Virus record (IMG/VR): IMGVR_UViG_3300042922_000542
Coordinates: 1 to 64,000 of that record
Reading direction: 5' to 3' (one strand)
Length of the DNA: 64,000 nt
This document shows positions 3,377-26,080 of the stretch, one piece after another. The notes beneath the pieces were generated by a model. That model was not told where the DNA came from. It saw only the letters and a program-made list of their open reading frames with translations, and did no database searches. A program made the position numbers and the translations under genes. Position 1 is the stretch's first letter. Every line of letters begins with the position of its first letter.

Positions 3377-5290
3377 TTATTTAATTTTATAACCAAATAA
3401 ATCATTATCTTTAAAACCTATTACATCAGGTCTATTCATAAATTGTAAACGAAGCGTTGCTAAATTATAATCTCGCTTATCAATAGCATCCCTTATTAAA
3501 GTAGGATCGCTTAAAGGCATTTTCATTTGAATAAATGGTACGCCTACATATGGTCTAGCACTATGAGCATATTCAGTATTAAACTGAGTTTCATATACAG
3601 TTTTATTAGATTTACGAGATAAACTATCCCACGAACCTGGTAAACCACTACAATTATTAAATTCTAATAATGATATCGGTGACAAATCTCGTTTAAATGA
3701 ATATTTAAATCTGATATCTAATCTAGGTGCATCACCAGGACTATTATTAGAATTCCAACTTAACGCATTTGCTCCGGTATTAACAGGGAACACACCATAA
3801 TATTTTGTCCAATATAATAAGTCTGATCCATCTTCACCAGTTTTAAGTACATATACTGATGCTGCATAATCCAATGTTTTTGTATACACGTGACTATTAT
3901 TTATATTAGGGGTATCCATACTATTTTCATTTAATGAATATGACGGAGACCACGCTCCTCTAGATACATTATCAATGTATATTACCCACAATTTCAATAA
4001 ATTAATTATAGAATAATACTTATCATCTGTAAAACTAACGCTGAATTCTCCAGCAGATCTGCCAGTATACGTATTTCCATACTGCATGCTATATTCATTC
4101 CATGATTTTCCTGCAGTATTAGTACCAATCGTTTCATCTTCAATTTGAAAAGATGATGCCGCATTAGACAATAACATATTAAAATTATTACTATCATTGC
4201 AATGACGTTTATCTACTAATAATTTAAATAGTGCAGGATTTCGCATCCACAACATTGCAGATTCTGTATGATTTAAACATTGAGCTGCTGCATTTAAACC
4301 TTGTCCTCGTCTTTCGAGAATATTCAAATCGGGACGTGTAAAAAATACGTGTGTAAATGATTTATTATGAGCTAAATTCGGATCAGGTGTTTTAAATCTA
4401 TTATATAAAAAATATCTCATATATTTTGCAATAGCGTTATCACCATGTACCGGAATACCCAATGCTGCTCTAAGTTCAGTCATACTCTCTTCCAATGTTC
4501 TTGTTTTTTTATTAGCACCCAATGATGTAGGACCAGTTTCTATTCTATAGTCATATGATGCAGGTATATAATCTTTATAATTTGCCGAACTGATTTTATT
4601 TGGAAAAGCTTGATTATTTTGTATAACATTTTTATTATCATTTAACATTTCAGCTAATTTTGATTTATCTGATGCAGCTGTAGGAGTTTCTAATCGCATT
4701 ATACTATTATCTAATTTAATTTTGGTAGCGCCACTATCAGATAAATTTACATCATATTGTATTTTTTTAAACTTAACTGGAGCAATTTTATTATCCATTG
4801 ATGTTTCAGCGATCAATGTATTTAATGCCAACTCATTTTTTAATGAACCAGTTTGATGAATTTGGGTAGTCGTAGTCTGTTTTGTGTTAGCAGGCGGTTT
4901 CCAAGACAAGGCATGTTCGGTAGTTGTAAATAATCCTTGGACTTGAGGCGCCTTTGATAATACAGTAACAGCTTCTTTCTCTACCTTAGATTTACCTATA
5001 GCTGGTATAGGTTTTGGTTCTGTAATAATAACCATTTCAGGATGAATTATATTGTTAGCGATACCATCGGGCTCTACTTGCCAAACAACAACATTTTTAC
5101 CACCACTCTCAGTATATACGCGAACCTTAGTCTTTCCATAGAAATTTGATACAGATTCGACTGTTCCCCATAGTGCGCCACCTTCAATGTATTTAGACAC
5201 ATGTGTTGCAATTTTGTTATTTGTTATATCTTTGGCTCCAATTTTAATTTGTACTTTGTCACCGGGATGTATATCTTTTACATTCGCCAT
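3377..5290 (-). CDS. Virion protein with tail-tube/baseplate-hub-like C-terminal domain
   Basis: 637 aa; motifs FFTRPDLNI, EFSVSFTDD, LDYAASVY, YWTKYYGVFP resemble jumbo-phage tube-fold proteins; RBS AGGAGG. Confidence 0.55.
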   Translation of the reverse strand: MANVKDIHPGDKVQIKIGAKDITNNKIATHVSKYIEGGALWGTVESVSNFYGKTKVRVYTESGGKNVVVWQVEPDGIANNIIHPEMVIITEPKPIPAIGKSKVEKEAVTVLSKAPQVQGLFTTTEHALSWKPPANTKQTTTTQIHQTGSLKNELALNTLIAETSMDNKIAPVKFKKIQYDVNLSDSGATKIKLDNSIMRLETPTAASDKSKLAEMLNDNKNVIQNNQAFPNKISSANYKDYIPASYDYRIETGPTSLGANKKTRTLEESMTELRAALGIPVHGDNAIAKYMRYFLYNRFKTPDPNLAHNKSFTHVFFTRPDLNILERRGQGLNAAAQCLNHTESAMLWMRNPALFKLLVDKRHCNDSNNFNMLLSNAASSFQIEDETIGTNTAGKSWNEYSMQYGNTYTGRSAGEFSVSFTDDKYYSIINLLKLWVIYIDNVSRGAWSPSYSLNENSMDTPNINNSHVYTKTLDYAASVYVLKTGEDGSDLLYWTKYYGVFPVNTGANALSWNSNNSPGDAPRLDIRFKYSFKRDLSPISLLEFNNCSGLPGSWDSLSRKSNKTVYETQFNTEYAHSARPYVGVPFIQMKMPLSDPTLIRDAIDKRDYNLATLRLQFMNRPDVIGFKDNDLFGYKIK

Positions 5291-11557: not shown

Positions 11558-11589
11558 AATAATGGGGGACAATCAAGTCCCCCATTATT
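11558..11589. terminator. Bidirectional terminator
   Basis: AATAATGGGGGAC-AATCAA-GTCCCCCATTATT between convergent genes. Confidence 0.85.
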
Positions 11590-11607: not shown

Positions 11608-11901
11608 TTAGCAATTGCATCCACGACTAGTACAAGAGCAGCCATCATTATCTTCAACTAATATCATTCCGCAGTTATTGACAAACGAAATATACAAATC
11701 CGATTTTTTATCAGATGTAGACGAAACGTAGCCCTTACTTAATTCTTGTCTTAATACACTTAGACGAGTTGTTATATCAACCCATTCATTCGTGAATGAT
11801 TCATGCACGCCAACAAATTGTTCAACCGCATTAGCACGCCCAATCAATTCTAGTGGCAATACATTTGTATCAATTAATTCATATTGAACTTTCTTAACCA
11901 T
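11608..11901 (-). CDS. Small accessory protein (TIGR04116-like) with Cys-rich tail
   Basis: 97 aa; 'EW..ITTRLSVLRQELSKGY...LYISFVNNCGMIL' and tail GCSCTSRGCNC; last gene of the cassette. Confidence 0.55.
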   Translation of the reverse strand: MVKKVQYELIDTNVLPLELIGRANAVEQFVGVHESFTNEWVDITTRLSVLRQELSKGYVSSTSDKKSDLYISFVNNCGMILVEDNDGCSCTSRGCNC

Positions 11902-11915
11902 TATATTTCTCCTGA

Positions 11916-13181
11916 TTAATAATTTATTTTTCTGAATGATCTCTGTTGATCTTCTCGATTCATAGGTTGAGGATATCCAATTGTAGTCGGTTCTGTATGA
12001 TATGATTTCTCTGAAATATCTGCAGATGTATTAGATTGTAAATACGTTGTACAATGTCCTACGCATGTACTAATGCATTTATCAGTACAATTATTAAAAC
12101 AATCTCTATTACAACTTGAGTCACACCACCAACCACATAAATTGGCACAATTAGAACAAGTACCCTGACATTTAACTGAGCATAAACCAATACACATACC
12201 CACACATGAGTAGCAAAGATCACTACAACCACCACATGAGTCAGTGCAATTATCATAACAATGATTCACACATTTATTTACGCATGTTTGAGTACAATAA
12301 ATATTACATGCTTGGCCACATTGAACCGAACATTGACTTGAACAAGGTCCACAATTAAATCCACAATTGTTAGCGCATGTTCTACATAATGATGAACATG
12401 CATTTGAACATAGTGCTGTACATGATTTACCAACACAATTAACACTACATGTATTTACACATGCACCCTTACTTGCACCGCATGATGAACGACAAGCTTC
12501 TAGATGACAACTCGTGTTACAATCCTTTTGACATAGACCGGTACACGAACCACCGCAATTTCCACATCCCGTTGATCCAGGCGGTTTAGCATCCTCTTGG
12601 GATGATGCATGACCATCACATGTTGTACATATACCAGTGTTTGCATTACAATCACTTGCACAATTTGTACAACCGCCACCACCAGAACTAGTAGTTGCAC
12701 ATTCTTCTCTACACGATGTTCCACATCCTGTGCATGCACCACTACAACCACTACAACCATCTCCAGTACTAGTGCCGCTACATCCTCCACCACAGGTACC
12801 ACCGCATCCACCTTCACATCCATTTCCACAACTAGAGCTACACATAGAACAGTCACCTGAACAACTTCCAGGGCAACTAGTATCTCCAGGATCTGGTGCA
12901 GCAGATGACGATCCTTTACAAGTACCAGTACAACCACTACACCCTCCACTGCATCCATTAGAACATGATCCGGACCCAGCATTACAAGTATCTCTACACA
13001 TACCTTTACATGTTGTACCACAACTATCAGAACTACAACCTGCACCGCATCTAGATTGACAAGATGTTCCACAACTACCACATCCAGTACCAATACTCTT
13101 TGTTGCTGTGGTACTACTAGAACTACTAGCAGCATCTTTTGCTTGTTTTATAGCACCTATTATTCCTGACAATAAACTCAT
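11916..13181 (-). CDS. CxxxC-repeat Cys-rich protein, putative radical SAM substrate
   Basis: 421 aa, about 78 Cys (hand count), mostly spaced CxxxC/CxxC; RBS AAGGTGAT. Confidence 0.85.
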   Translation of the reverse strand: MSLLSGIIGAIKQAKDAASSSSSTTATKSIGTGCGSCGTSCQSRCGAGCSSDSCGTTCKGMCRDTCNAGSGSCSNGCSGGCSGCTGTCKGSSSAAPDPGDTSCPGSCSGDCSMCSSSCGNGCEGGCGGTCGGGCSGTSTGDGCSGCSGACTGCGTSCREECATTSSGGGGCTNCASDCNANTGICTTCDGHASSQEDAKPPGSTGCGNCGGSCTGLCQKDCNTSCHLEACRSSCGASKGACVNTCSVNCVGKSCTALCSNACSSLCRTCANNCGFNCGPCSSQCSVQCGQACNIYCTQTCVNKCVNHCYDNCTDSCGGCSDLCYSCVGMCIGLCSVKCQGTCSNCANLCGWWCDSSCNRDCFNNCTDKCISTCVGHCTTYLQSNTSADISEKSYHTEPTTIGYPQPMNREDQQRSFRKINY

Positions 13182-13214
13182 TTATCAATCACCTTCTTTA
13201 CACAATGATCTGTA

Positions 13215-14852
13215 TCAAACACGTATACCCGTATTTGCATTACAATCTATTTTACATGTAGCTGTACAAGCACTAGTACAACCAAAACACGTTCCAGTAC
13301 ATGTTAAATTACATGATCCAGTACAACCATCACAAGCTGTACACCCATTTGAACATCCAGTGTCACAGTTACCACAATTATTACTGCAGGTTACAGTACA
13401 ATTATCGTAGCAACTATTTTTACAAGTACTGAAACATGACAATGTACATACACCCTCACATACACCAGCACAATCACCTGTACAATCTGCAACACAACCC
13501 TCTTTACACGATTGACCCTTTCCAGATTTATAACCACCATTATGTTCATTATCATTACTAATGCATCCACCAAAACAACTAGTTGAACAATATGTATTAC
13601 AAGTTGTAAAACATAATGCTGAGCATACTGAATCCCAACATGTCGTTTTTTTATTAGGATAATATTGACATGAGAATGAACATCCACTGCATGTATACGT
13701 TGATGATATTACTGTATTTTGGATAACTGCACTTGAGGCTGTCTGTCCACAATTATTACTACATCCGCTAGGGTTACCTGTAGATTTAATAGAAACTGTA
13801 TCAGCTCCTGCATTCAAACAAGATTTACCACCAATATCACTACATTTGGTTTTACATCCAGAATAACATTGTGTCGTACATCCTGTACATATATTACCAC
13901 AATCTGAATGACATGCATTACCGCATCTGCTCCAACATGTGGATGCACAACCTTCGGAACATTGATTATCACATGTTAGATAACATAAACCTGTACATGC
14001 TACATTACACAATCCTTTAGATCCTGTTGAAATTTGTCTTGATGGATATTCTGATCCTCTATTAGGGTTTCTAGGATTAGCTCCAAATCTAGATGCTGAA
14101 CTAATGCCACCTGTCACTTGATCAACTACTGTTTCATTTCGTTGATCGTCCTGAGTAATTATATGACGATGAACAATCGGTGAAACATATGGGTTTATCG
14201 GATGATGATCAATAACACCAGGACTTGCTCCATAATCATCATAGAAGTTAGTCTCATCAGGACCACTATGACCTGGTAATATTTCTTCACCATCATATTC
14301 TCCAGATGGATATTCTACTGGAACTGTTACGGTTTTACCATTATTTGCAATAGGGTATAAACCATATCCTGTATACATACCATTCGTAACTCCATTATTA
14401 GGGTCATATTTCTGAAAAGATTCAGTAACGGGCACATTTAAAATATCATTTTCAGCAGCTTCTATTTTTGTTGATATATCTTCAGGATCTCTAAACACTA
14501 AACCCGCAACCTCATCTCTGCCATAGAATAAATCTATGTCATGGATCTTAGATAAACCAACTAAATAGTTTTGTATTTCATCAACATCAATTCTAGCACT
14601 AGATGAATTAATATCTCCAACAGGATTATCTCCTTGCGCAGGATATTTGATATTTCTTGTAGGTTCTATGGATCCGGTAGATGGAGTATTAATGGTATAT
14701 GTTTTATCTGTGACTTCACTAGTCCTATCAGCTCCGACTGCAGGTGTAGTTAACGGATCCCACCATTTAAATGTTCCACGACGTTTAATCTCAGCATTTA
14801 ATTTATCCTTAATTGCATCAAATTCTGTTTTTGAATATAATTTATCATTCAC
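13215..14852 (-). CDS. Protein with Cys-free N-half and CxxxC-repeat C-half, putative radical SAM substrate
   Basis: About 545 aa from GTG 14852 (RBS GAGGTG); about 52 Cys, all in the C-half starting at GLCNVACTGLC. Confidence 0.85.
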   Translation of the reverse strand: MNDKLYSKTEFDAIKDKLNAEIKRRGTFKWWDPLTTPAVGADRTSEVTDKTYTINTPSTGSIEPTRNIKYPAQGDNPVGDINSSSARIDVDEIQNYLVGLSKIHDIDLFYGRDEVAGLVFRDPEDISTKIEAAENDILNVPVTESFQKYDPNNGVTNGMYTGYGLYPIANNGKTVTVPVEYPSGEYDGEEILPGHSGPDETNFYDDYGASPGVIDHHPINPYVSPIVHRHIITQDDQRNETVVDQVTGGISSASRFGANPRNPNRGSEYPSRQISTGSKGLCNVACTGLCYLTCDNQCSEGCASTCWSRCGNACHSDCGNICTGCTTQCYSGCKTKCSDIGGKSCLNAGADTVSIKSTGNPSGCSNNCGQTASSAVIQNTVISSTYTCSGCSFSCQYYPNKKTTCWDSVCSALCFTTCNTYCSTSCFGGCISNDNEHNGGYKSGKGQSCKEGCVADCTGDCAGVCEGVCTLSCFSTCKNSCYDNCTVTCSNNCGNCDTGCSNGCTACDGCTGSCNLTCTGTCFGCTSACTATCKIDCNANTGIRV

Positions 14853-14915
14853 ACTTATCACCTCAATCACATTTATATTTGCATTTATTTAATTTTAAAG
14901 AGTCTGCAAATTCAA

Positions 14916-16794: not shown

Positions 16795-16824
16795 GATAAT
16801 GGATGGGCAATCCCATCCATTATC
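16795..16824. terminator. Terminator hairpin between the two rSAM cassettes
   Basis: GATAATGGATGGG-CAAT-CCCATCCATTATC. Confidence 0.8.
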
Positions 16825-16825
16825 A

Positions 16826-17662
16826 CTATCTATTATTTGATATGTATTCTTGATATATCATGGATAGTTCTTGATCAACTTTATTCCGCTCAGTTAATTT
16901 TGTATCATCATATTTTTGCTCGGATAACAATTGACCATTACAGTCCTTCGTTGAAATTACATAATGTGAATTGACATTAACGGTATTAATATTCTCAATA
17001 GTGATTTCATTATCGATAAAATAATTATCATAGATTAATTGTTTCATAATACTCATATAATGATCTCTAATAATATTGAAATCATCACTGACAAATCCAA
17101 ATTCAATTCGTTTAAATCCAATAGAAACTAAATTATTGATACTTTCTTTAAGATATCCAATATTAGATTTATTTAAAGTACAATGTGCAATTAGGTTAAT
17201 CCCACTCTTTATGAATTTGCCTATATTGTCTATTATATAATCATATGATCCTTTCCCGTTTTTAAGTATACGATTAATATTGTGCGATAATTTATTACCA
17301 TCTATTGAAATACATAATAAAATATTATATTTTTTAATGGTATTAATAATTTCATCTGAATACATCATACCGTTAGTTGAAGTTACAAATTTAAATTTAT
17401 ATTCAGAATAATGATCAATAATATATTTACATATTTGATTTAGTCGATCTATAAATAAAAATGGTTCACCGCCTAATAATTCAACAGTAATCGACCTACC
17501 CGTAATATGCAACATACTTTCATCGAATATCCGAATTATATCATCTATGGTACTATCTGATTCAATATCACTATCAAGCATATTATTATATACATAACAA
17601 TATTTACATCTCATATTGCAGAGCTTAGTAATATACATATTTATATGTCGACATTCAGACAT
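16826..17662 (-). CDS. Radical SAM protein lacking a SPASM domain
   Basis: TKLCNMRCKYCYV, LLGGEPFL, TNG, ISIDG; no C-terminal Cys cluster; ATG overlaps upstream TAA. Confidence 0.85.
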   Translation of the reverse strand: MSECRHINMYITKLCNMRCKYCYVYNNMLDSDIESDSTIDDIIRIFDESMLHITGRSITVELLGGEPFLFIDRLNQICKYIIDHYSEYKFKFVTSTNGMMYSDEIINTIKKYNILLCISIDGNKLSHNINRILKNGKGSYDYIIDNIGKFIKSGINLIAHCTLNKSNIGYLKESINNLVSIGFKRIEFGFVSDDFNIIRDHYMSIMKQLIYDNYFIDNEITIENINTVNVNSHYVISTKDCNGQLLSEQKYDDTKLTERNKVDQELSMIYQEYISNNR

Positions 17663-18783
17663 TAATCATCATCCTTCAAATTAAATTTAATACGAATATT
17701 GTCATATCCAATTTTATTAATAAACATTTCAGATGCATCATAAAAAAGTTTTATTGCTTTACATACACCATCTATGGGTTCACATATATTTTTCTTACCA
17801 TGTTCCATTATTGCTGCAAAACATTGACCATAGCATACGCCATATAATTCACAATTTCTACATTTTGGAGATATATCATGTGAAAAGTTTTTATATATAT
17901 TTGCAATATTATTGGTTTCATCAATATCAGTAAATATGGAACCAAGTTTAGTATGTTCAAAGCGGTTATTGAAAAAACGTTGACAAGGATATATGTCACC
18001 ATTGGGTGCTAATGCAATTGTAGATGAACCAGCTGAACAGAAGTAGGTTCTACCGTGGGCTTTACATCTATATGGTAATAGTAAGCCAGTATCAAGAAAT
18101 GGAGTTTCCGAGTAAAATTTATCAACTAGAAATTCTACATATTCAATATAAAAATTCTTTAATCTCTCCAATTGCACATCATTCCAATCGCAATCTCGGA
18201 CAATACTCAAATTAATACGCCTGAATCCATCTTTGATGTAATCTTTAATACCATCTAGGACATAATCAATATTATCAGGTGATATCATAAATTTAAATAT
18301 TTTAGAGCTGATTGGTCTGTTATTAGCTTCACAATATAGTGTAGCACCTTTTATACAGTCATCATAGCTACCTTTACCATTTGGATATACCCGACATCTA
18401 TCATGGCTGCTTCTCCCACCATCTAGGGACATACTAATCCCTATTTCATTATTCTTGAGATATTCAACCTTCTCTTTATTTAATAATGTCAAATTACTTG
18501 TAGTCATAATTGCAATATTTACATCTGGTCGCATTTTTTTTACTTCATTGATATTATCAACTATTTTACAGAATTTTTCCCATTCCATTATAGCCTCTCC
18601 ACCGAATAAATCAATATGAAGAGATTTTATATCATTTTTAACGATAATATTATTAAGAAATACGGGCAAATATTCAATAACATCATCCGATATTGTTAAC
18701 CCGTTTGTTTTATTAACATAGCAATATTTACAACGCAAATTGCATTTCTCAGTTACAATAATAATGATTGTACTAATTTTCAT
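17662..18783 (-). CDS. Radical SAM/SPASM maturase
   Basis: TEKCNLRCKYCYV, FGGE, SLDG; SPASM CSAG..GDIYPCQRF..CRNCELYGVCYGQC..VC. Confidence 0.92.
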   Translation of the reverse strand: MKISTIIIIVTEKCNLRCKYCYVNKTNGLTISDDVIEYLPVFLNNIIVKNDIKSLHIDLFGGEAIMEWEKFCKIVDNINEVKKMRPDVNIAIMTTSNLTLLNKEKVEYLKNNEIGISMSLDGGRSSHDRCRVYPNGKGSYDDCIKGATLYCEANNRPISSKIFKFMISPDNIDYVLDGIKDYIKDGFRRINLSIVRDCDWNDVQLERLKNFYIEYVEFLVDKFYSETPFLDTGLLLPYRCKAHGRTYFCSAGSSTIALAPNGDIYPCQRFFNNRFEHTKLGSIFTDIDETNNIANIYKNFSHDISPKCRNCELYGVCYGQCFAAIMEHGKKNICEPIDGVCKAIKLFYDASEMFINKIGYDNIRIKFNLKDDD

Positions 18784-18794
18784 TTTTTATACCT

Positions 18795-19208
18795 CTAATT
18801 ATCACCTATTACCAAACCACATTGATCACAATCACATGCACATCTATCACAATTGCAAGAACATCTATCGCAATCACAATCACAATTATCGCAATTACAT
18901 TGACATGTATTATTGTATATTGTCGTAGCAGCTATACTGGCATTATTAAAAACTGTAGCAAGTATATATTTGCCTTGTTCAAAATTTATCAATGAACTAA
19001 GATCTGCCTTGGGATATACCGCTGAATGACCATTTGCAGCAACTAAATTATTTTTAATTGATGTAAACAAAGTGCTAGTTATTAAATTACCTTTCACGGC
19101 TCTTTCTGTATTTGCAGGTTGACCAAGTCGTATTCGAGTTTGATCAACCGATGCAGCAACAACATTTGCATCATCCGCTAACATTTTCTGACCTTTAACT
19201 ATTGCCAA
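18795..19208 (-). CDS. Small protein with C-terminal (CxCxCDx)4 repeat, putative rSAM substrate
   Basis: Likely TTG start 19208 after GGGTGA; tail CQCNCDN-CDCDCDR-CSCNCDR-CACDCDQ-C. Confidence 0.85.
   Translation of the reverse strand: MAIVKGQKMLADDANVVAASVDQTRIRLGQPANTERAVKGNLITSTLFTSIKNNLVAANGHSAVYPKADLSSLINFEQGKYILATVFNNASIAATTIYNNTCQCNCDNCDCDCDRCSCNCDRCACDCDQCGLVIGDN
18829..18905 (-). repeat. Imperfect 21-bp tandem repeat encoding CxCxCDx heptads
   Basis: Four 7-codon units visible in both DNA and protein. Confidence 0.75.
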
Positions 19209-19518
19209 TGTTATCACCCACTTTTACAATAAAATCAATAGACTCATATAAAATATCACTGATTGAGAAGTGATATATATTCTTTACAATATTACTTATA
19301 GATTTAACGATGGTACCATTTACCAATACCTGAACTGATTTTACTGGTTTATCCCTAAAATATTGATTTAAAACTGTACCTGTTGTTGGAACAACATCAT
19401 TTATGATACGTAATTGAGTTAATTCACTCCCAACATTCATAAAAAAATTTATCCCCGCAGTTTTATCAATTATAACATCTTCATCAATATATTCAATTTT
19501 TATTTTTACACCTTCCAT
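19195..19518 (-). CDS. Small beta-rich hypothetical protein in rSAM cassette
   Basis: 107 aa, RBS AGGAGG; resembles the neighbouring ORF. Confidence 0.7.
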   Translation of the reverse strand: MEGVKIKIEYIDEDVIIDKTAGINFFMNVGSELTQLRIINDVVPTTGTVLNQYFRDKPVKSVQVLVNGTIVKSISNIVKNIYHFSISDILYESIDFIVKVGDNIGNS

Positions 19519-19549: not shown

Positions 19550-19951
19550 TTATTCATAATTAAAATGGAGTTCGGAATTAGATAAATATATTCGATCTAT
19601 TATTATATCATCCATAATATTTATACCATATGAGATACTCTTTACGCCTAATATTTCATCACATATTTCATCTCCATTAAACATTTGAACATTGATTACT
19701 TTTCGATCCATCAATGCTTGACGAATTATATCAAATTTTTCATGAAAGTCGTTAACTGTGACATTTCTAATGATTAATGCATTTGATATCATTTTGCTTA
19801 AACTATTTGCCACTGTGAGACTATCATCTCGGTATCGTACGGCCGATACTACCGGGGATTGAGGTAGGGATGTTGGATCTATATTAATATTAGGCACCAC
19901 ATCTAATGTCATCGTCACCATTGGTTCGATTATTATTTTTACACGTGTCAT
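19550..19951 (-). CDS. Small beta-rich hypothetical protein in rSAM cassette
   Basis: Likely start MTRVK at 19951 (RBS AAGGGG); overlaps the 3' end of the upstream rSAM gene. Confidence 0.65.
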   Translation of the reverse strand: MTRVKIIIEPMVTMTLDVVPNINIDPTSLPQSPVVSAVRYRDDSLTVANSLSKMISNALIIRNVTVNDFHEKFDIIRQALMDRKVINVQMFNGDEICDEILGVKSISYGINIMDDIIIDRIYLSNSELHFNYE

Positions 19952-21224
19952 TGCATGAACACCCCTTTTCATTTATCATACGAGAAACTTTTTCTGTTAT
20001 TAATAATTCATGTAATTCTAATAAATGTTGTAGCGTTATTATTTGACCTTCCGTAAAATTATCAGTTAGAAGTCTACCCATTTCTTGCAAAACTGTAATT
20101 GAGACTTCGTGATCTCTATGAATTTTACCAAATAGTCGTTCATATACATAAATCGATAATTCCATTTCAACCTCTAATAATTTACAATACTTAGGAAAAC
20201 CATATGCGATATTTCCATTTTCTATATAATTAATAGCCATACAGCTCTTGCAGTTATAATTCTTACATTCAGAACATGCCTTGTATCCAGTCATATATTT
20301 TTTATACATCTCTTCATATGGTGCACATTTTAATGTATTTATACCATTAAATACATCACCAATTATAGTATCTGGGTCATTCATGAATGCATGGCATGGA
20401 TATATATAACCATCTGGAGCTACAGTGCAAAATGATACACCCGCACCGCATGTTTTATCGGCATGTCGCTCTTTATATACCATTGATGAAAATTGTTTAT
20501 AATTCCCTCCACTATTTTCACAATCCTCAATGATTGCATTGGCAATATGGGTATATTGCTCTCTAAATATAACATAATCATTTTCATCCCAATTCTCTTC
20601 ATGAAGAGGCATAAACCATATCTTATCAAATCTTAAGATATTTTTAAAGAAGATGTATGACTCATGTGCATATGGTAATGTTGCTTTGGTTATAACACTA
20701 TGCACTGATAATTTATTAGATGGAATGTCTAATTTATCAAATAATGCTCTAAGTTTTTTTATCGTCTCTATTATATTATGAGATGAACCATTACCCGCAT
20801 GATCAATTCTTTGCAGATCATTAATCCTAGGAATTGAATCAAATGATAATTGAATTGAAAAACTTTCAGGATTATTTACCCACCAATTGGTTAGAAATTG
20901 TTCGTATTCATTATTGTATAATACACCATTTGTTATCAATTCACTATTATATTTCAAACCATGTTTTTTACATTGATCCATAGCATAATTGAATATGTGG
21001 TTCATAGTATTTATATTGAGTGTAGGCTCCCCTCCAAAATATGACACACTAATACTTGTTTTATTATTAACTAAAGCATCATGGATAAGTAAATCAATTG
21101 TTTTTTCACCAATCTCATTACTCATAAATTTACCCTTTGATGAATTATTTTTTTCAAAACAATATTTACAATTAAGATTACATGTGTCTGTTAATAGTAT
21201 CGATGCACTCGTAAATGATGACAT
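19890..21224 (-). CDS. Radical SAM/SPASM maturase
   Basis: TDTCNLNCKYCFE, YFGGEP, ITNG; SPASM CGAG..GYIYPCHAF..CSECKNYNCKSC..YC. Confidence 0.92.
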   Translation of the reverse strand: MSSFTSASILLTDTCNLNCKYCFEKNNSSKGKFMSNEIGEKTIDLLIHDALVNNKTSISVSYFGGEPTLNINTMNHIFNYAMDQCKKHGLKYNSELITNGVLYNNEYEQFLTNWWVNNPESFSIQLSFDSIPRINDLQRIDHAGNGSSHNIIETIKKLRALFDKLDIPSNKLSVHSVITKATLPYAHESYIFFKNILRFDKIWFMPLHEENWDENDYVIFREQYTHIANAIIEDCENSGGNYKQFSSMVYKERHADKTCGAGVSFCTVAPDGYIYPCHAFMNDPDTIIGDVFNGINTLKCAPYEEMYKKYMTGYKACSECKNYNCKSCMAINYIENGNIAYGFPKYCKLLEVEMELSIYVYERLFGKIHRDHEVSITVLQEMGRLLTDNFTEGQIITLQHLLELHELLITEKVSRMINEKGCSCNDTCKNNNRTNGDDDIRCGA

Positions 21225-21285
21225 TTATTACGCCTCCTGATAATTATAGAAATTAATATTGTATGTTGTTTAAGATTCCTATATT

Positions 21286-21320
21286 TAAATAGTTAATCCG
21301 ATTGTCGGATTAACTATTTA
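21286..21320. terminator. Hairpin at end of tail-fibre gene
   Basis: TAAATAGTTAATCCGA-TTG-TCGGATTAACTATTTA. Confidence 0.7.
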
Positions 21321-23634
21321 AAATTAATATTTTTACTCTTTGAATATCTTCCGTATCTTTATTCTCTAATGCCTTACCTATTATAGATCCTGGAATACTT
21401 GATACTGAACTTTTTCCAACGCCTTTGATAGACGATGTTGTTATTAAATCTCCAGCTTTAACCTTGCCGGTAATATATGCAGATACTCTTCCTGTTAATC
21501 CTATAGGTATATTTCTTTCTAAGTTTTCCTCAGTGGTATATCCTTCTTCCAAACCTAATAAATATCCATATGTATCAGATACTACACCAACAACCAATGT
21601 CGAATATTCACCAGTGCTTTTTCGATAATTACCAGTTTCTGGATTTAATTCTATAATATCGCCAGGTTTAAAATCTTCAGACATATCATCCTTTTTAAAT
21701 AACTCGGCAACGTCACCCCATACTGCATTCTGAACTAAAGAGCCTGTTATGGTACCGGTAACTGTTAAATTACCAGTGATCGTTCCGCCAGTGAGTGGTA
21801 AATATGGATGGGTGTGTCCATTATCAGATTTATTATTCCATGCTGCTATTTGAGCATCTGTTACAAATCTATTAGTAGTATTTTGAGTTATAATCGATGC
21901 TGGGTGGCTCGCAGGATGTTGATATGAATATGGAGCGAGTTTAGATGCCAAAGCTTGTAGTTGTTCCACCGTGGATCTACTACTAATAGAATCGATTATA
22001 GTTGCAAATGATACATCAGTTGGTGCTGCAGCAGCACTAGTCATATTTCCTTTAATAGAAAATGCAGGTATATCTGCTAATTTTATATTCGTTACAGCTT
22101 TATCTCGTATTTTTGTAGTTAATATAGATAAATCTGCAATATTATAATCAGTTACAGCATTCATTTGAATTTTATGATTATTTACACAACCCTCACCCAA
22201 TTCATCGGAAGTTATAGTAAATGCAGCAATCTTTATACCAGTAACAGCCCTATCTGCAATAGCTGGCGTTTTAACGGACCCTTGCAATATATGATAATCG
22301 CGTATTGCATTACCAGCTATCTTTGAAGCAATGATCGTCCCATCTAATAAGTGATTATACATTACATTATTATCAGCTATATGTTCGGCAAGAATTGCAC
22401 CTGCTTTAATATCAACACTGTCCGCAACGGCTTTGTATGCTAAGTTTTGTAATCCTGTAACGTGTATTTCATCAACTACCGTACTGACATCACCATTTAT
22501 CATGTATGATATAGAACCATTATTTGAACCAGATCCTATCTCTATAGATTGTATAAATCTGCCATCAGCTTCAGCTTTACTGTATACATCTGTAGCCTGT
22601 GGTAGTGCTGCCACATTTATTGATAGACCGTTAGGTGTTTCAGAAAAATAAGTTGCATCATATTTTGATATTGTGAAATCCTGTATATCCCACCAATAAT
22701 TATCACCATCATGTTTACATGCAGCAATTGCACTATAATTAGAATTTTCTTTATTTTTAATCAGATATATATGTCTTTGTAATAATGGCGATGCCATCGG
22801 TAAATCTGAAACTTTATTTACAATATCAATAAATTCAACGTAGTCAGTTAAATCAGGTCCAACTATGGTATCAACATATGATGTCACGAAGTCAACTACT
22901 GCTTTAGATGATGGATATTTAACATCATCATAGTTTGTAGTATGTGATATAGTCACTGATTTGTTAGCAATATTTTCTTTAGCTGCAAATAATGGTCCAT
23001 GTGAAAATGGATTTGTCAAATGTGTTGTATAATCATTTAATAAATTAACCATTCTGGCATCTAGTAAATCAATACTATCGTTTAATTCAGTTTGTACATT
23101 AGATAATGCATTACGTATATCACTATGTGCTGTATTGCTAGTATCATGAATACCAATAATATTATTAATTGTATTTGAAACACTACCATCCGAATCTAAT
23201 TGATCTATTGTAACGTTGTGAGGATTATTAAAATTTGCAAGATGTGCGGTTAATGATGATAGGTCTATATTAAAATTATAATTTTCTAATATCGACATTA
23301 CTGCATTTCTCTGATTATATGATAATGGCTTCTCCAAATCAGATGTATTGTTAACCCGACCGAGTCCTATATCTTCAGATGTAATATTAATATCGCCGTA
23401 CATCCCATTTACAGATGTTACTGGGAATGTAATATATCCAATACCACCTTCTTTTATTTCTTCACGTATATCATCTAGTATTTGACGTAATGTTATTTCG
23501 TTCGCATCCTGTTGGTCATATATAGCATCTAATACACTTCTAGGCCAAATTATATCGGCCATACTAGTACTCGGATTATTCTCATCATCAAATACAATTT
23601 GATCGCGGATAACTTTATTCCTAATATTATTCAT
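21310..23634 (-). CDS. Tail fibre protein with C-terminal intramolecular-chaperone (peptidase G2-like) domain
   Basis: PVTSVNG..G, GLGRVNNTSDLEKP, NPHNVT, 10-aa IxxxAVTxxK repeats, HPASHPAS, HTHPYLPLTGGTITG; C-terminal DVAELF..PGD..VVGVVSD..GRV..GDL..IIGKALE; start ATG 23634 with AGGAGG. Confidence 0.85.
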   Translation of the reverse strand: MNNIRNKVIRDQIVFDDENNPSTSMADIIWPRSVLDAIYDQQDANEITLRQILDDIREEIKEGGIGYITFPVTSVNGMYGDINITSEDIGLGRVNNTSDLEKPLSYNQRNAVMSILENYNFNIDLSSLTAHLANFNNPHNVTIDQLDSDGSVSNTINNIIGIHDTSNTAHSDIRNALSNVQTELNDSIDLLDARMVNLLNDYTTHLTNPFSHGPLFAAKENIANKSVTISHTTNYDDVKYPSSKAVVDFVTSYVDTIVGPDLTDYVEFIDIVNKVSDLPMASPLLQRHIYLIKNKENSNYSAIAACKHDGDNYWWDIQDFTISKYDATYFSETPNGLSINVAALPQATDVYSKAEADGRFIQSIEIGSGSNNGSISYMINGDVSTVVDEIHVTGLQNLAYKAVADSVDIKAGAILAEHIADNNVMYNHLLDGTIIASKIAGNAIRDYHILQGSVKTPAIADRAVTGIKIAAFTITSDELGEGCVNNHKIQMNAVTDYNIADLSILTTKIRDKAVTNIKLADIPAFSIKGNMTSAAAAPTDVSFATIIDSISSRSTVEQLQALASKLAPYSYQHPASHPASIITQNTTNRFVTDAQIAAWNNKSDNGHTHPYLPLTGGTITGNLTVTGTITGSLVQNAVWGDVAELFKKDDMSEDFKPGDIIELNPETGNYRKSTGEYSTLVVGVVSDTYGYLLGLEEGYTTEENLERNIPIGLTGRVSAYITGKVKAGDLITTSSIKGVGKSSVSSIPGSIIGKALENKDTEDIQRVKILILNS

Positions 23635-23807
23635 TGTTATCATCCTCCTATATGTCATAAAATATAATTATTACTCTAATTTATATTAAACAAATGGTTT
23701 GAGTGCTGATGAAGAAAAGCAAAAAAATGAATTATTTAGATTATATATTATTCTATAAATATACCATAAAATCATATGGTATAATAAATAAAATGGAGGC
23801 ATCGCAG

Positions 23808-24756: not shown

Positions 24757-25263
24757 TCATACCATTAATACAGAATCCATATTTTTTCTAGCGTATGTTA
24801 AAAATTTATATTGTAGACCTGTTGTAGATGTAAGAATTTCGCTAGATTTGACTAATTCGAATGTATCGTCATTAAAATTTGGCATGAATATATCGGCTTT
24901 AAATGTTGATTGTATTTGAGTGATCAATAATATGTCACACAAAGGGAGAAACTGTTTATATATCATGGAGCCTCCAATAACATATATGTCTTCATTAGAA
25001 TTCTTATATGCGTCATGGAACCCCTTAATTGAATCAAATTGTTCAATATCATCTCCAAGTAATGTGTCAGATGACGAGATAACTATATGATGCCTGTTTT
25101 TTAATGGCTTATGTAATGATTCATATGTACGTCTTCCCATCAATATTTTATGATGCTCCGTCATACATTTAAAATATCTAAGATCTTCTGGAAGACTCCA
25201 TGGCAATTTGCCATTGTTTCCAATTTCACGATTTAATCCCATTGCTCCAATCAATATAAACAT
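24757..25263 (-). CDS. folA: Dihydrofolate reductase
   Basis: IGNNGKLPW..EDLRYFK, LMGRRTYES, PLKNR, VIGGSMIY. Confidence 0.95.
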   Translation of the reverse strand: MFILIGAMGLNREIGNNGKLPWSLPEDLRYFKCMTEHHKILMGRRTYESLHKPLKNRHHIVISSSDTLLGDDIEQFDSIKGFHDAYKNSNEDIYVIGGSMIYKQFLPLCDILLITQIQSTFKADIFMPNFNDDTFELVKSSEILTSTTGLQYKFLTYARKNMDSVLMV

Positions 25264-25291
25264 AATTATCTCCTTATATATTTATTAATTA

Positions 25292-26080
25292 TTATACAGC
25301 AGCTTTACCTAGGTCAAGCTTGCCAGCATTTTGATAATTTTCTAAAACAAAGTCTTCAGCTTTAAATGCATAGAAATCGGTTGTATCATTTTTTATAATC
25401 AATTTTGGTGCATCATATCTAGGTCTTGTCAATTGTTCTTTTAATCCATCGATTTGATTTTCATAAATATGTGCATTATTTATTACATGAGTCAATGTGC
25501 CAACTTGTAAACCGCTCGATTGAGCTAACATGTGAACTAATACTGCAAATTGGCTAGTATTGAATGGCACACCTAATCCCCAGTCGGCACTACGTTGTAC
25601 CAACATACAATTCAGTTTACCCCATGCTACATCAAACATTGTTAAGAAACAACAAGGTGGAAGATTGCATTCAGGTAAATGTGGTATTTGCCATAAGTTT
25701 ACCATCATTCTTCTATCCTGTGGATTATTTCTTAAACTATCTAAAAGATTATCAATTTGATTGTACTTCTTAACAACAAATCCATATGATTCGCCGATTG
25801 TATTGTCTTCACGAGCCCATGAATCCCATATATGTATACCTTGGTTTTGTAATAAACTTACATCATTTGATTGCTGTTGATATATCCATAACATTTCTTT
25901 GACGGCAGTTTTAAATGCAACTGTTTTTGTAGTTAGTATAGGAAATTCCTCAGCTAAATTAAACTGCATTATTTGATGCGGCAATTTCCATGTTTTAATT
26001 CCAGTTCTGTTTTGATCAAAATATCCAGCATCAATAATGTTCTGTCCAATATTTAAATATTGATCATCGTATTTACTCAT
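25292..26080 (-). CDS. thyA: Thymidylate synthase
   Basis: RTG, FPILTTK, ExLW, LPPC, QRSAD.GLGVPFN, HIYEN. Confidence 0.96.
   Translation of the reverse strand: MSKYDDQYLNIGQNIIDAGYFDQNRTGIKTWKLPHQIMQFNLAEEFPILTTKTVAFKTAVKEMLWIYQQQSNDVSLLQNQGIHIWDSWAREDNTIGESYGFVVKKYNQIDNLLDSLRNNPQDRRMMVNLWQIPHLPECNLPPCCFLTMFDVAWGKLNCMLVQRSADWGLGVPFNTSQFAVLVHMLAQSSGLQVGTLTHVINNAHIYENQIDGLKEQLTRPRYDAPKLIIKNDTTDFYAFKAEDFVLENYQNAGKLDLGKAAV

Follow-up and report, generated by a model that had tools for sequence, protein, structure and literature searches.

Does the cysteine-free N-terminal part of a small phage protein, which precedes an array of cysteine heptads and is encoded among radical-SAM (rSAM) genes, serve as a disposable leader peptide, as in RiPP biosynthesis, or is it a lasting structural part of the mature protein? 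The gene lies on the minus strand of the window, the 64,000-nucleotide stretch analyzed here, which comprises the first 64 kb of the 246,147-bp IMG/VR virus record IMGVR_UViG_3300042922_000542 (direct terminal repeats, about 30% G+C). A sequence-only reading had noted three similar segments (G-x-x-hydrophobic followed by a helix) in the N-terminal domain, and had inferred that they look structural rather than leader-like, resemble short repeats of phage tail-associated proteins and may anchor a modified Cys tail on the neighboring fiber, and that the Cys-free N-half of a second, larger Cys-rich protein (551 aa in our analysis) may play the same role. The analysis described below indicates that the domain is more likely a lasting structural part than a disposable leader. 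The observation of three segments is confirmed, although only comparison with relatives shows it, while the interpretation is partly supported.

The minus strand carries a single run of genes encoding, in order, a 782-aa tail fiber, a 444-aa rSAM/SPASM enzyme, two small ORFs, the 137-aa target, two further rSAM enzymes, a 603-aa enzyme of the CXXX-repeat type, CxxxC-rich proteins of 551 and 421 aa, and a 97-aa ORF (Table 1). Three terminator-like hairpins divide this run into the fiber, a heptad module and a CXXX module, forming hairpin-bounded cassettes in the late, same-strand gene run. The two modules are separable, since locus L002 (L numbers denote loci fetched for comparison, and P numbers proteins recovered by sequence search) has the fiber and the CXXX module but no heptad module, while L004 has the heptad module with no CXXX genes directly after it.

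Table 1. Coordinates of features in the window and in related loci (residues in TTG numbering).
Feature	Location	Strand	Description
Target gene	window 18795..19208	-	137 aa from TTG 19208, stop codon at 18795-18797; alternative starts GTG 19217 (140 aa) and ATG 19184 (129 aa, the database gene call)
Repeat unit 1	window 19125..19196	-	residues 5-28; K-G-Q-K, then predicted helix 11-27 (19128-19178)
Repeat unit 2	window 19023..19097	-	residues 38-62; K-G-N-L, then predicted helix 45-59 (19032-19076)
Repeat unit 3	window 18906..18980	-	residues 77-101; Q-G-K-Y, then predicted helix 84-100 (18909-18959), running directly into the first Cys
Cys array	window 18819..18905	-	four C-x-C-[ND]-C-D-x heptads plus a closing Cys (13 Cys, spacing 2,2,3); modelled as disordered (pLDDT below 50)
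C-terminal tail	window 18798..18818	-	seven residues (G-L-V-I-G-D-N); no S74 tag, unlike the L042-type relatives
rSAM/SPASM enzyme	window 19890..21224	-	444 aa; PapB model 183 bits (cut-off 340)
Small ORF	window 19550..19972	-	up to 140 aa; no family match; an ORF of similar size holds the same position in L003 and L004
Small ORF	window 19195..19518	-	107 aa; overlaps the target start by 14 nt; 56% identical to the L004 ORF in the same position; no family match
Second rSAM/SPASM enzyme	window 17662..18783	-	373 aa; 68% identical to the L004 374-aa enzyme, 29% to the L042 364-aa enzyme
Third rSAM enzyme	window 16826..17662	-	278 aa; no SPASM domain detected; 59% identical to the L004 277-aa enzyme
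Hairpin	window 16795..16824	-	terminator-like, 13-bp stem; closes the heptad module ahead of the CXXX module
Hairpin	window 21284-21322		terminator-like; separates the fiber gene from the heptad module
Hairpin	window 11558-11589		terminator-like; bounds the CXXX module
Tail-fiber gene	window 21310..23658	-	782 aa; PHROG tail-fiber hits; Peptidase_G2-like C-terminal chaperone region just below the Pfam cut-off; immediately upstream of the module
551-aa CxxxC-rich protein	window 13215..14870	-	N-terminal 25 or so residues (about 14766-14843) resemble unit 1
551-aa and 421-aa proteins together	window 11916-14870	-	match one 975-aa protein at L002:10016-12943 (48% and 39% identity)
97-aa ORF	window 11608-11901	-	end of the CXXX module; short C-terminal Cys cluster (C-S-C-T-S-R-G-C-N-C)
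ORFs just upstream of the fiber gene	window 24757-26080		resemble dihydrofolate reductase and thymidylate synthase on reading of the translations only
Split S74 target and following gene	L042:9411-10285; L061:3857-4841; L066:3887-4788; L077:3848-4726		target ends in the first 12 residues of S74, next gene encodes the rest
P0004	L003:3105-4604		residues about 160-499 with Hint/intein-like motifs
Tandem paralogous N-domain/heptad genes	L064:3380-3955 and 3959-4528; L069:3896-4657 and 4645-5064		two copies within one locus
Second substrate type	L022:6377-6940 (example)		about 187 aa, next to related rSAMs

The three segments are present on the minus strand at 19164-19202, 19062-19100 and 18945-18983 (residues 6-18, 40-52 and 79-91 in numbering from the GTG at 19217). 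Within this one sequence their similarity is no better than chance, the triple scoring 37 against 34.5 +/- 6.4 in shuffles (32% of which reach it) and the best 16-mer pair giving p = 0.52. Relatives nevertheless show a true triplication. The same three positions give significant internal repeats in P0004 (p = 0.003) and in the L058 member (p = 0.006), and borderline ones in L004 (0.07) and L042 (0.05). Unit-versus-unit profile alignments built from six members fall in register (P = 1e-3, 5e-3 and 1.4e-4), and in the AlphaFold2 model the long helices each start five residues after the glycine of the unit (G6, G40 and G79). The reading in which the segments are a chance resemblance in an ordinary small helical protein, suggested by the shuffle tests alone, is contradicted by these findings and is very unlikely.

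The database gene call would cut off the G-x-x part of the first unit. The ortholog in L004 instead starts at an ATG in exactly the register of TTG 19208 (M-A-x-x-K-G-x-x-x-L-A-x-D), with the same 14-nt overlap of the upstream gene, and the BLASTP alignment to P0004 also extends back to that glycine. Position 19208, the upper coordinate given by the sequence-only reading, is therefore the likely start.

Searches of Pfam, NCBIfam and PHROGs gave no hit for the target, including curated repeat or tail models such as PTR (PF12789), and a profile search of PDB sequences also gave none. Searches of GenBank phages by tblastn and megablast gave no match for the target, P0004 or the N-half of the 551-aa protein, word-index protein searches with two queries each found only the query itself, and pattern scans with the closest three N-domains found nothing in IMG/VR, the metagenome contigs or the GTDB genomes. 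An exhaustive HMMER search with the N-domain found one true relative, P0004, which is 35% identical over the whole domain and has the same Y-N-N-T-C junction, followed by C-x-C-N-C-N-x heptads. Its contig (L003) has the same gene order, with a fiber-gene end, an rSAM 34% identical to the 444-aa enzyme, two small ORFs, the target and another rSAM. A 3561-aa protein from the same search (P0003), matching in 14 stretches at E 9e-5, was set aside as summed weak matches to a cadherin-like repeat rather than kinship.

Scanning IMG/VR with the rSAM alignment gave 56 loci, many with a Cys-dense ORF beside the enzyme, including a close relative, L004, whose rSAM is about 65% identical and whose target is 133 aa. 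Scanning with the L042 target added 17 more loci. A domain HMM built from both sets gives significant hits to 22 ORFs, some on near-identical contigs, representing at least 19 distinct proteins. All carry a Cys-rich array, in every member inspected the domain runs straight into it, and most of the loci also carry rSAM genes of the PapB/SCIFF-like group. Apart from one 66-aa ORF at E 0.016, the unit and domain HMMs hit only Cys-rich proteins, and no tail-fiber gene, in the 246 kb of the phage itself and in the fetched loci. The claimed resemblance to repeats of known tail proteins is thus not supported. The family motif is C-x-C-[DN]-C-[ND]-x, and over 107 strict heptads the consensus is C-T-C-[DN]-C-N-Y, with D or N at position 4 in 92% and N or D at position 6 in 99%.

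With a six-sequence alignment, AlphaFold2 packs the three helices into one bundle (pLDDT about 80-90 over residues 11-100, pTM 0.64), with an additional short helix at 71-74, whereas a run with two sequences gave a mean pLDDT of 46 and was not used. Among solved structures, Foldseek found nothing and a wide VIA search found only generic helical bundles (Z at most 6.4), so that the fold says nothing about function. Libraries of predicted structures return phage proteins, including uncharacterized phage proteins in BFVD (probability up to 1.0, TM about 0.56), and, in the ESM Atlas, a viral cluster represented by a 206-aa protein in which 91% of members carry Peptidase_S74 (TM 0.64) and a cluster with the CXXX rSAM-target family (TM 0.61). 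The Atlas also gave matches of 90-97 residues at 2.0-2.7 Å to proteins that carry Ig, fn3 or Flg_new domains, which are treated as a lead because the position of the match within those proteins is not reported.

Peptidase_S74 is the self-cleaving chaperone that folds trimeric fiber and spike shafts, and provides the link to fibers. The 206-aa member in L075 consists of the N-domain, four heptad-like repeats and an intact C-terminal S74 domain (28.1 bits, cut-off 22, profile positions 1-49). The targets of L042, L061, L066 and L077 end in S-D-x-x-L-K-x-x-I-x-Y-x, the first 12 residues of S74, and a further ORF follows 15-40 nt later with its own ribosome-binding site and ATG, matching S74 at profile positions 16-55 in three loci and 19-57 in L066 (23-38 bits, all above the cut-off). 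This may be an intramolecular chaperone turned into a trans-acting one. The targets of L064, L069 and L074 end in the same tag. The window protein itself has no S74 domain or tag, so that its fiber nature rests on homology of the N-domain and the heptads. The N-domains of the window clade (window, L004, P0004, L058 and L014) align to those of the S74 clade at hhalign 94%, E 1.3e-7, over 84 columns with the units in order. In P0004 the array is followed by a region that we read, from motifs only, as a Hint/intein-like self-processing domain (a Cys-Val-Leu start, a T-x-x-H block and a C-terminal block, but no terminal His-Asn), which could cleave or transfer the N-terminal part. A phmmer search of PDB gave only E 0.8 to an intein.

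The genomic context is in agreement with a fiber-like protein. The locus follows tail-fiber genes in several phages. The module follows a fiber gene in the window, the upstream gene gives sub-threshold Peptidase_G2 hits in the window, L042 and L014, and in L014 the module lies between the fiber and lysis genes. In L003 the upstream gene end shows only weak similarity to the window fiber (E 0.022). Anchoring of the Cys tail on the 782-aa fiber remains a suggestion only.

The proposal of an equivalent role for the 551-aa protein is only partly true. It has a 48%-identical N-half in L002, where the single 975-aa protein has a further C-terminal domain of about 240 aa that the window lacks. Only its first 25 or so residues, a helix ending in an R-R-G motif, align to unit 1 of the family profile (hhalign 76%, E 2.2e-5; weaker with the window clade alone), and the other roughly 260 Cys-free residues have no counterpart, so that the idea holds for one unit and not for the whole N-half. 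Its nearest Atlas clusters by sequence features are CXXX-target proteins, mostly viral (0.86-0.88), which is a lead only. The 97-aa ORF at the end of the same module may be a further small substrate.

Three types of rSAM enzyme recur. The 444-aa type is found in L003, L004, L014 (where it is the only rSAM) and L042, and is the best match of the rSAM directly upstream of the target in the four S74-clade loci compared, while the 373-aa and 278-aa types recur in L004 and L042. The enzymes score best against the PapB, SCIFF and CXXX-repeat RiPP maturase models, with the QhpD model also among the hits, but all scores are below the equivalog cut-offs, indicating superfamily-level kinship only (best scores 183 bits for PapB, cut-off 340, and 142 for SCIFF, cut-off 425). 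The presence of three enzymes for three Cys per heptad is suggestive but unproven. The 107-aa and 140-aa ORFs, which are not present in all loci, are not detectably related to each other or to their positional counterparts in L003, and profile searches alone gave no PqqD/RRE hit for either.

The explanation we favor, with moderate confidence, is that the N-domain (residues about 5-101) is an internally triplicated three-helix bundle forming the permanent head of a small fiber-like phage protein. In this view the Cys heptads are the shaft or distal part, which the neighboring rSAM/SPASM enzymes probably modify, most plausibly by joining Cys to the invariant Asp/Asn positions through thioethers, for which only the motif gives support. 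What the analysis establishes is the repeat, the fold prediction and the family, the strict coupling of the domain to the Cys array, the S74 domain in homologs and the position next to tail-fiber genes, whereas retention of the domain on the mature protein, a trimeric state, membership of the virion and the chemistry of modification are inferred, in the absence of virion proteomics, structure or expression data (the only public run containing this sequence is a DNA soil metagenome, probably the source of the assembly). That a single chain with three equivalent helices could seat on a three-fold partner is speculation.

Two other accounts deserve consideration. The domain might stay on the product but be selected as a docking handle that recruits the enzymes to the Cys array, with any structural role secondary. 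This overlaps with the favored explanation and is not excluded, but appears unlikely as the main function. It would fit the absence of the domain from any protein without a Cys array in the loci searched (all 22 significant hits carry one), the lack of any tail-fiber gene among the unit and domain HMM hits, a pattern that fits this account equally well, the occurrence of one unit ending in R-R-G at the head of CXXX-type targets (the 551-aa protein, the L002 975-aa protein and L046), and the rSAM found directly upstream of the target in 6 of the 11 S74-clade loci where an upstream ORF was called (0-14 nt away or overlapping by 7 nt). In addition, the three enzymes align to the rSAM models from residues 2-12, leaving no N-terminal extension that could hold a leader-binding (RRE) domain, so that some part of the substrate may have to provide recognition. 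On the other hand, three units are kept in L014 where only one rSAM is present, and a 100-residue folded bundle is more than recognition usually needs. Co-folding of the 444-aa enzyme with residues 1-103 scored 0.00 against a mark of 0.32, an outcome without a verdict that counts neither way.

Alternatively, the domain might be a long, cleaved leader, comparable in size to NHLP or Nif11 leaders, releasing a cross-linked, ranthipeptide-like Cys-rich peptide at lysis as a cargo or weapon. The kinship of the enzymes, the Cys tail of only 36 residues and the L014 site between tail-fiber and lysis genes, where phages also carry accessory cargo, would be compatible with this, but we consider it improbable. 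The domain is not short or unstructured in the model (although size alone does not decide), and the residues before the first Cys vary between members (N-N-T, E-D-D, E-A-I, G-A-V, R-T-E) with no conserved cleavage motif and no Gly-Gly type site. No peptidase, exporter or transporter family matched the module proteins, although the two small ORFs without a family match could hide a protease or a chaperone. Homologs attach S74 or Hint-like domains at the C-terminal end, and their arrays reach 90 Cys (L065) and can be interrupted by other segments (L067 and L070), which is protein scale rather than peptide scale.

Phage fibers and spikes with a C-terminal S74 chaperone include the K1F endosialidase and the T5 L-shaped fiber pb1. 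Homologs of the window protein share the layout of N-terminal domain, repeat shaft and S74 domain with the S-D-x-R-x-K start (intact in L075), but have a shaft of Cys heptads beside dedicated rSAM genes, and in four loci S74 is split. In ranthipeptide and SCIFF systems (PapB/freyrasin, CteB) and the CXXX-repeat rSAM target family (TIGR04114-04119), SPASM-type enzymes likewise sit next to a Cys-rich repeat substrate with Asp/Asn close to each Cys. Here, however, the motif is not C-X3-D or CXXX, the substrate has a predicted folded N-domain of roughly 100 aa, and up to three enzymes are present per locus. The target lacks the Cys at every fourth residue of the CXXX-repeat targets (TIGR04114/PF27846), whereas the 551-aa and 421-aa proteins do show CxxxC runs, and their 603-aa enzyme scores 344 bits against the TIGR04115 cut-off of 350. 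QhpD, the rSAM/SPASM maturase of QhpC (gamma subunit of quinohemoprotein amine dehydrogenase), provides a precedent for Cys-to-Asp/Glu thioethers in a protein that remains a structural subunit, although QhpC is periplasmic, its leader is removed, and it has no repeat array and no phage context. The metal-stapled trimeric needle of the T4 gp37 tip, with H-x-H repeats, offers an analogy for short periodic metal-ligand residues in a fiber shaft, but the residues here are Cys, and the rSAM genes suggest covalent chemistry instead.

No paper describing such proteins was found in full-text literature searches. A possible but tentative reading is that they represent a so far undescribed class of phage fiber, with a single-chain, pseudo-three-fold head carrying a shaft of C-T-C-[DN]-C-N-Y heptads that up to three dedicated rSAM enzymes, perhaps one per Cys register, staple covalently, and that an S74 chaperone folds, in some phages as a 12-residue tag plus a trans-acting protein. 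If the domain is the lasting head of a fiber with an rSAM-modified shaft, phages use peptide-natural-product chemistry to build a virion part rather than a natural product, which would blur the line between RiPPs and ordinary protein maturation, and would mean that genome-mining tools mislabel such loci as bacteriocin or RiPP clusters. The family offers a compact test system of one substrate and one to three enzymes, and the split S74 would be a natural example of an intramolecular chaperone that has become intermolecular.

Further variation is seen among the relatives. Many S74-clade members (L064, L066, L069, L072 and L077) begin with a Cys/His knuckle (M-A-C-x-G-H-x-N-x-C-x-x-H) in the first 20 or so residues, ahead of unit 1, which looks like a small metal-binding site and is absent from the window protein. 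L064 and L069 contain tandem copies of the N-domain/heptad gene. In L022-L029 and L052, a second substrate type has three units that each end in an H-x-H motif, followed by a C-E-C-E/C-T-C-T dipeptide run, with a further large ORF after the rSAM.
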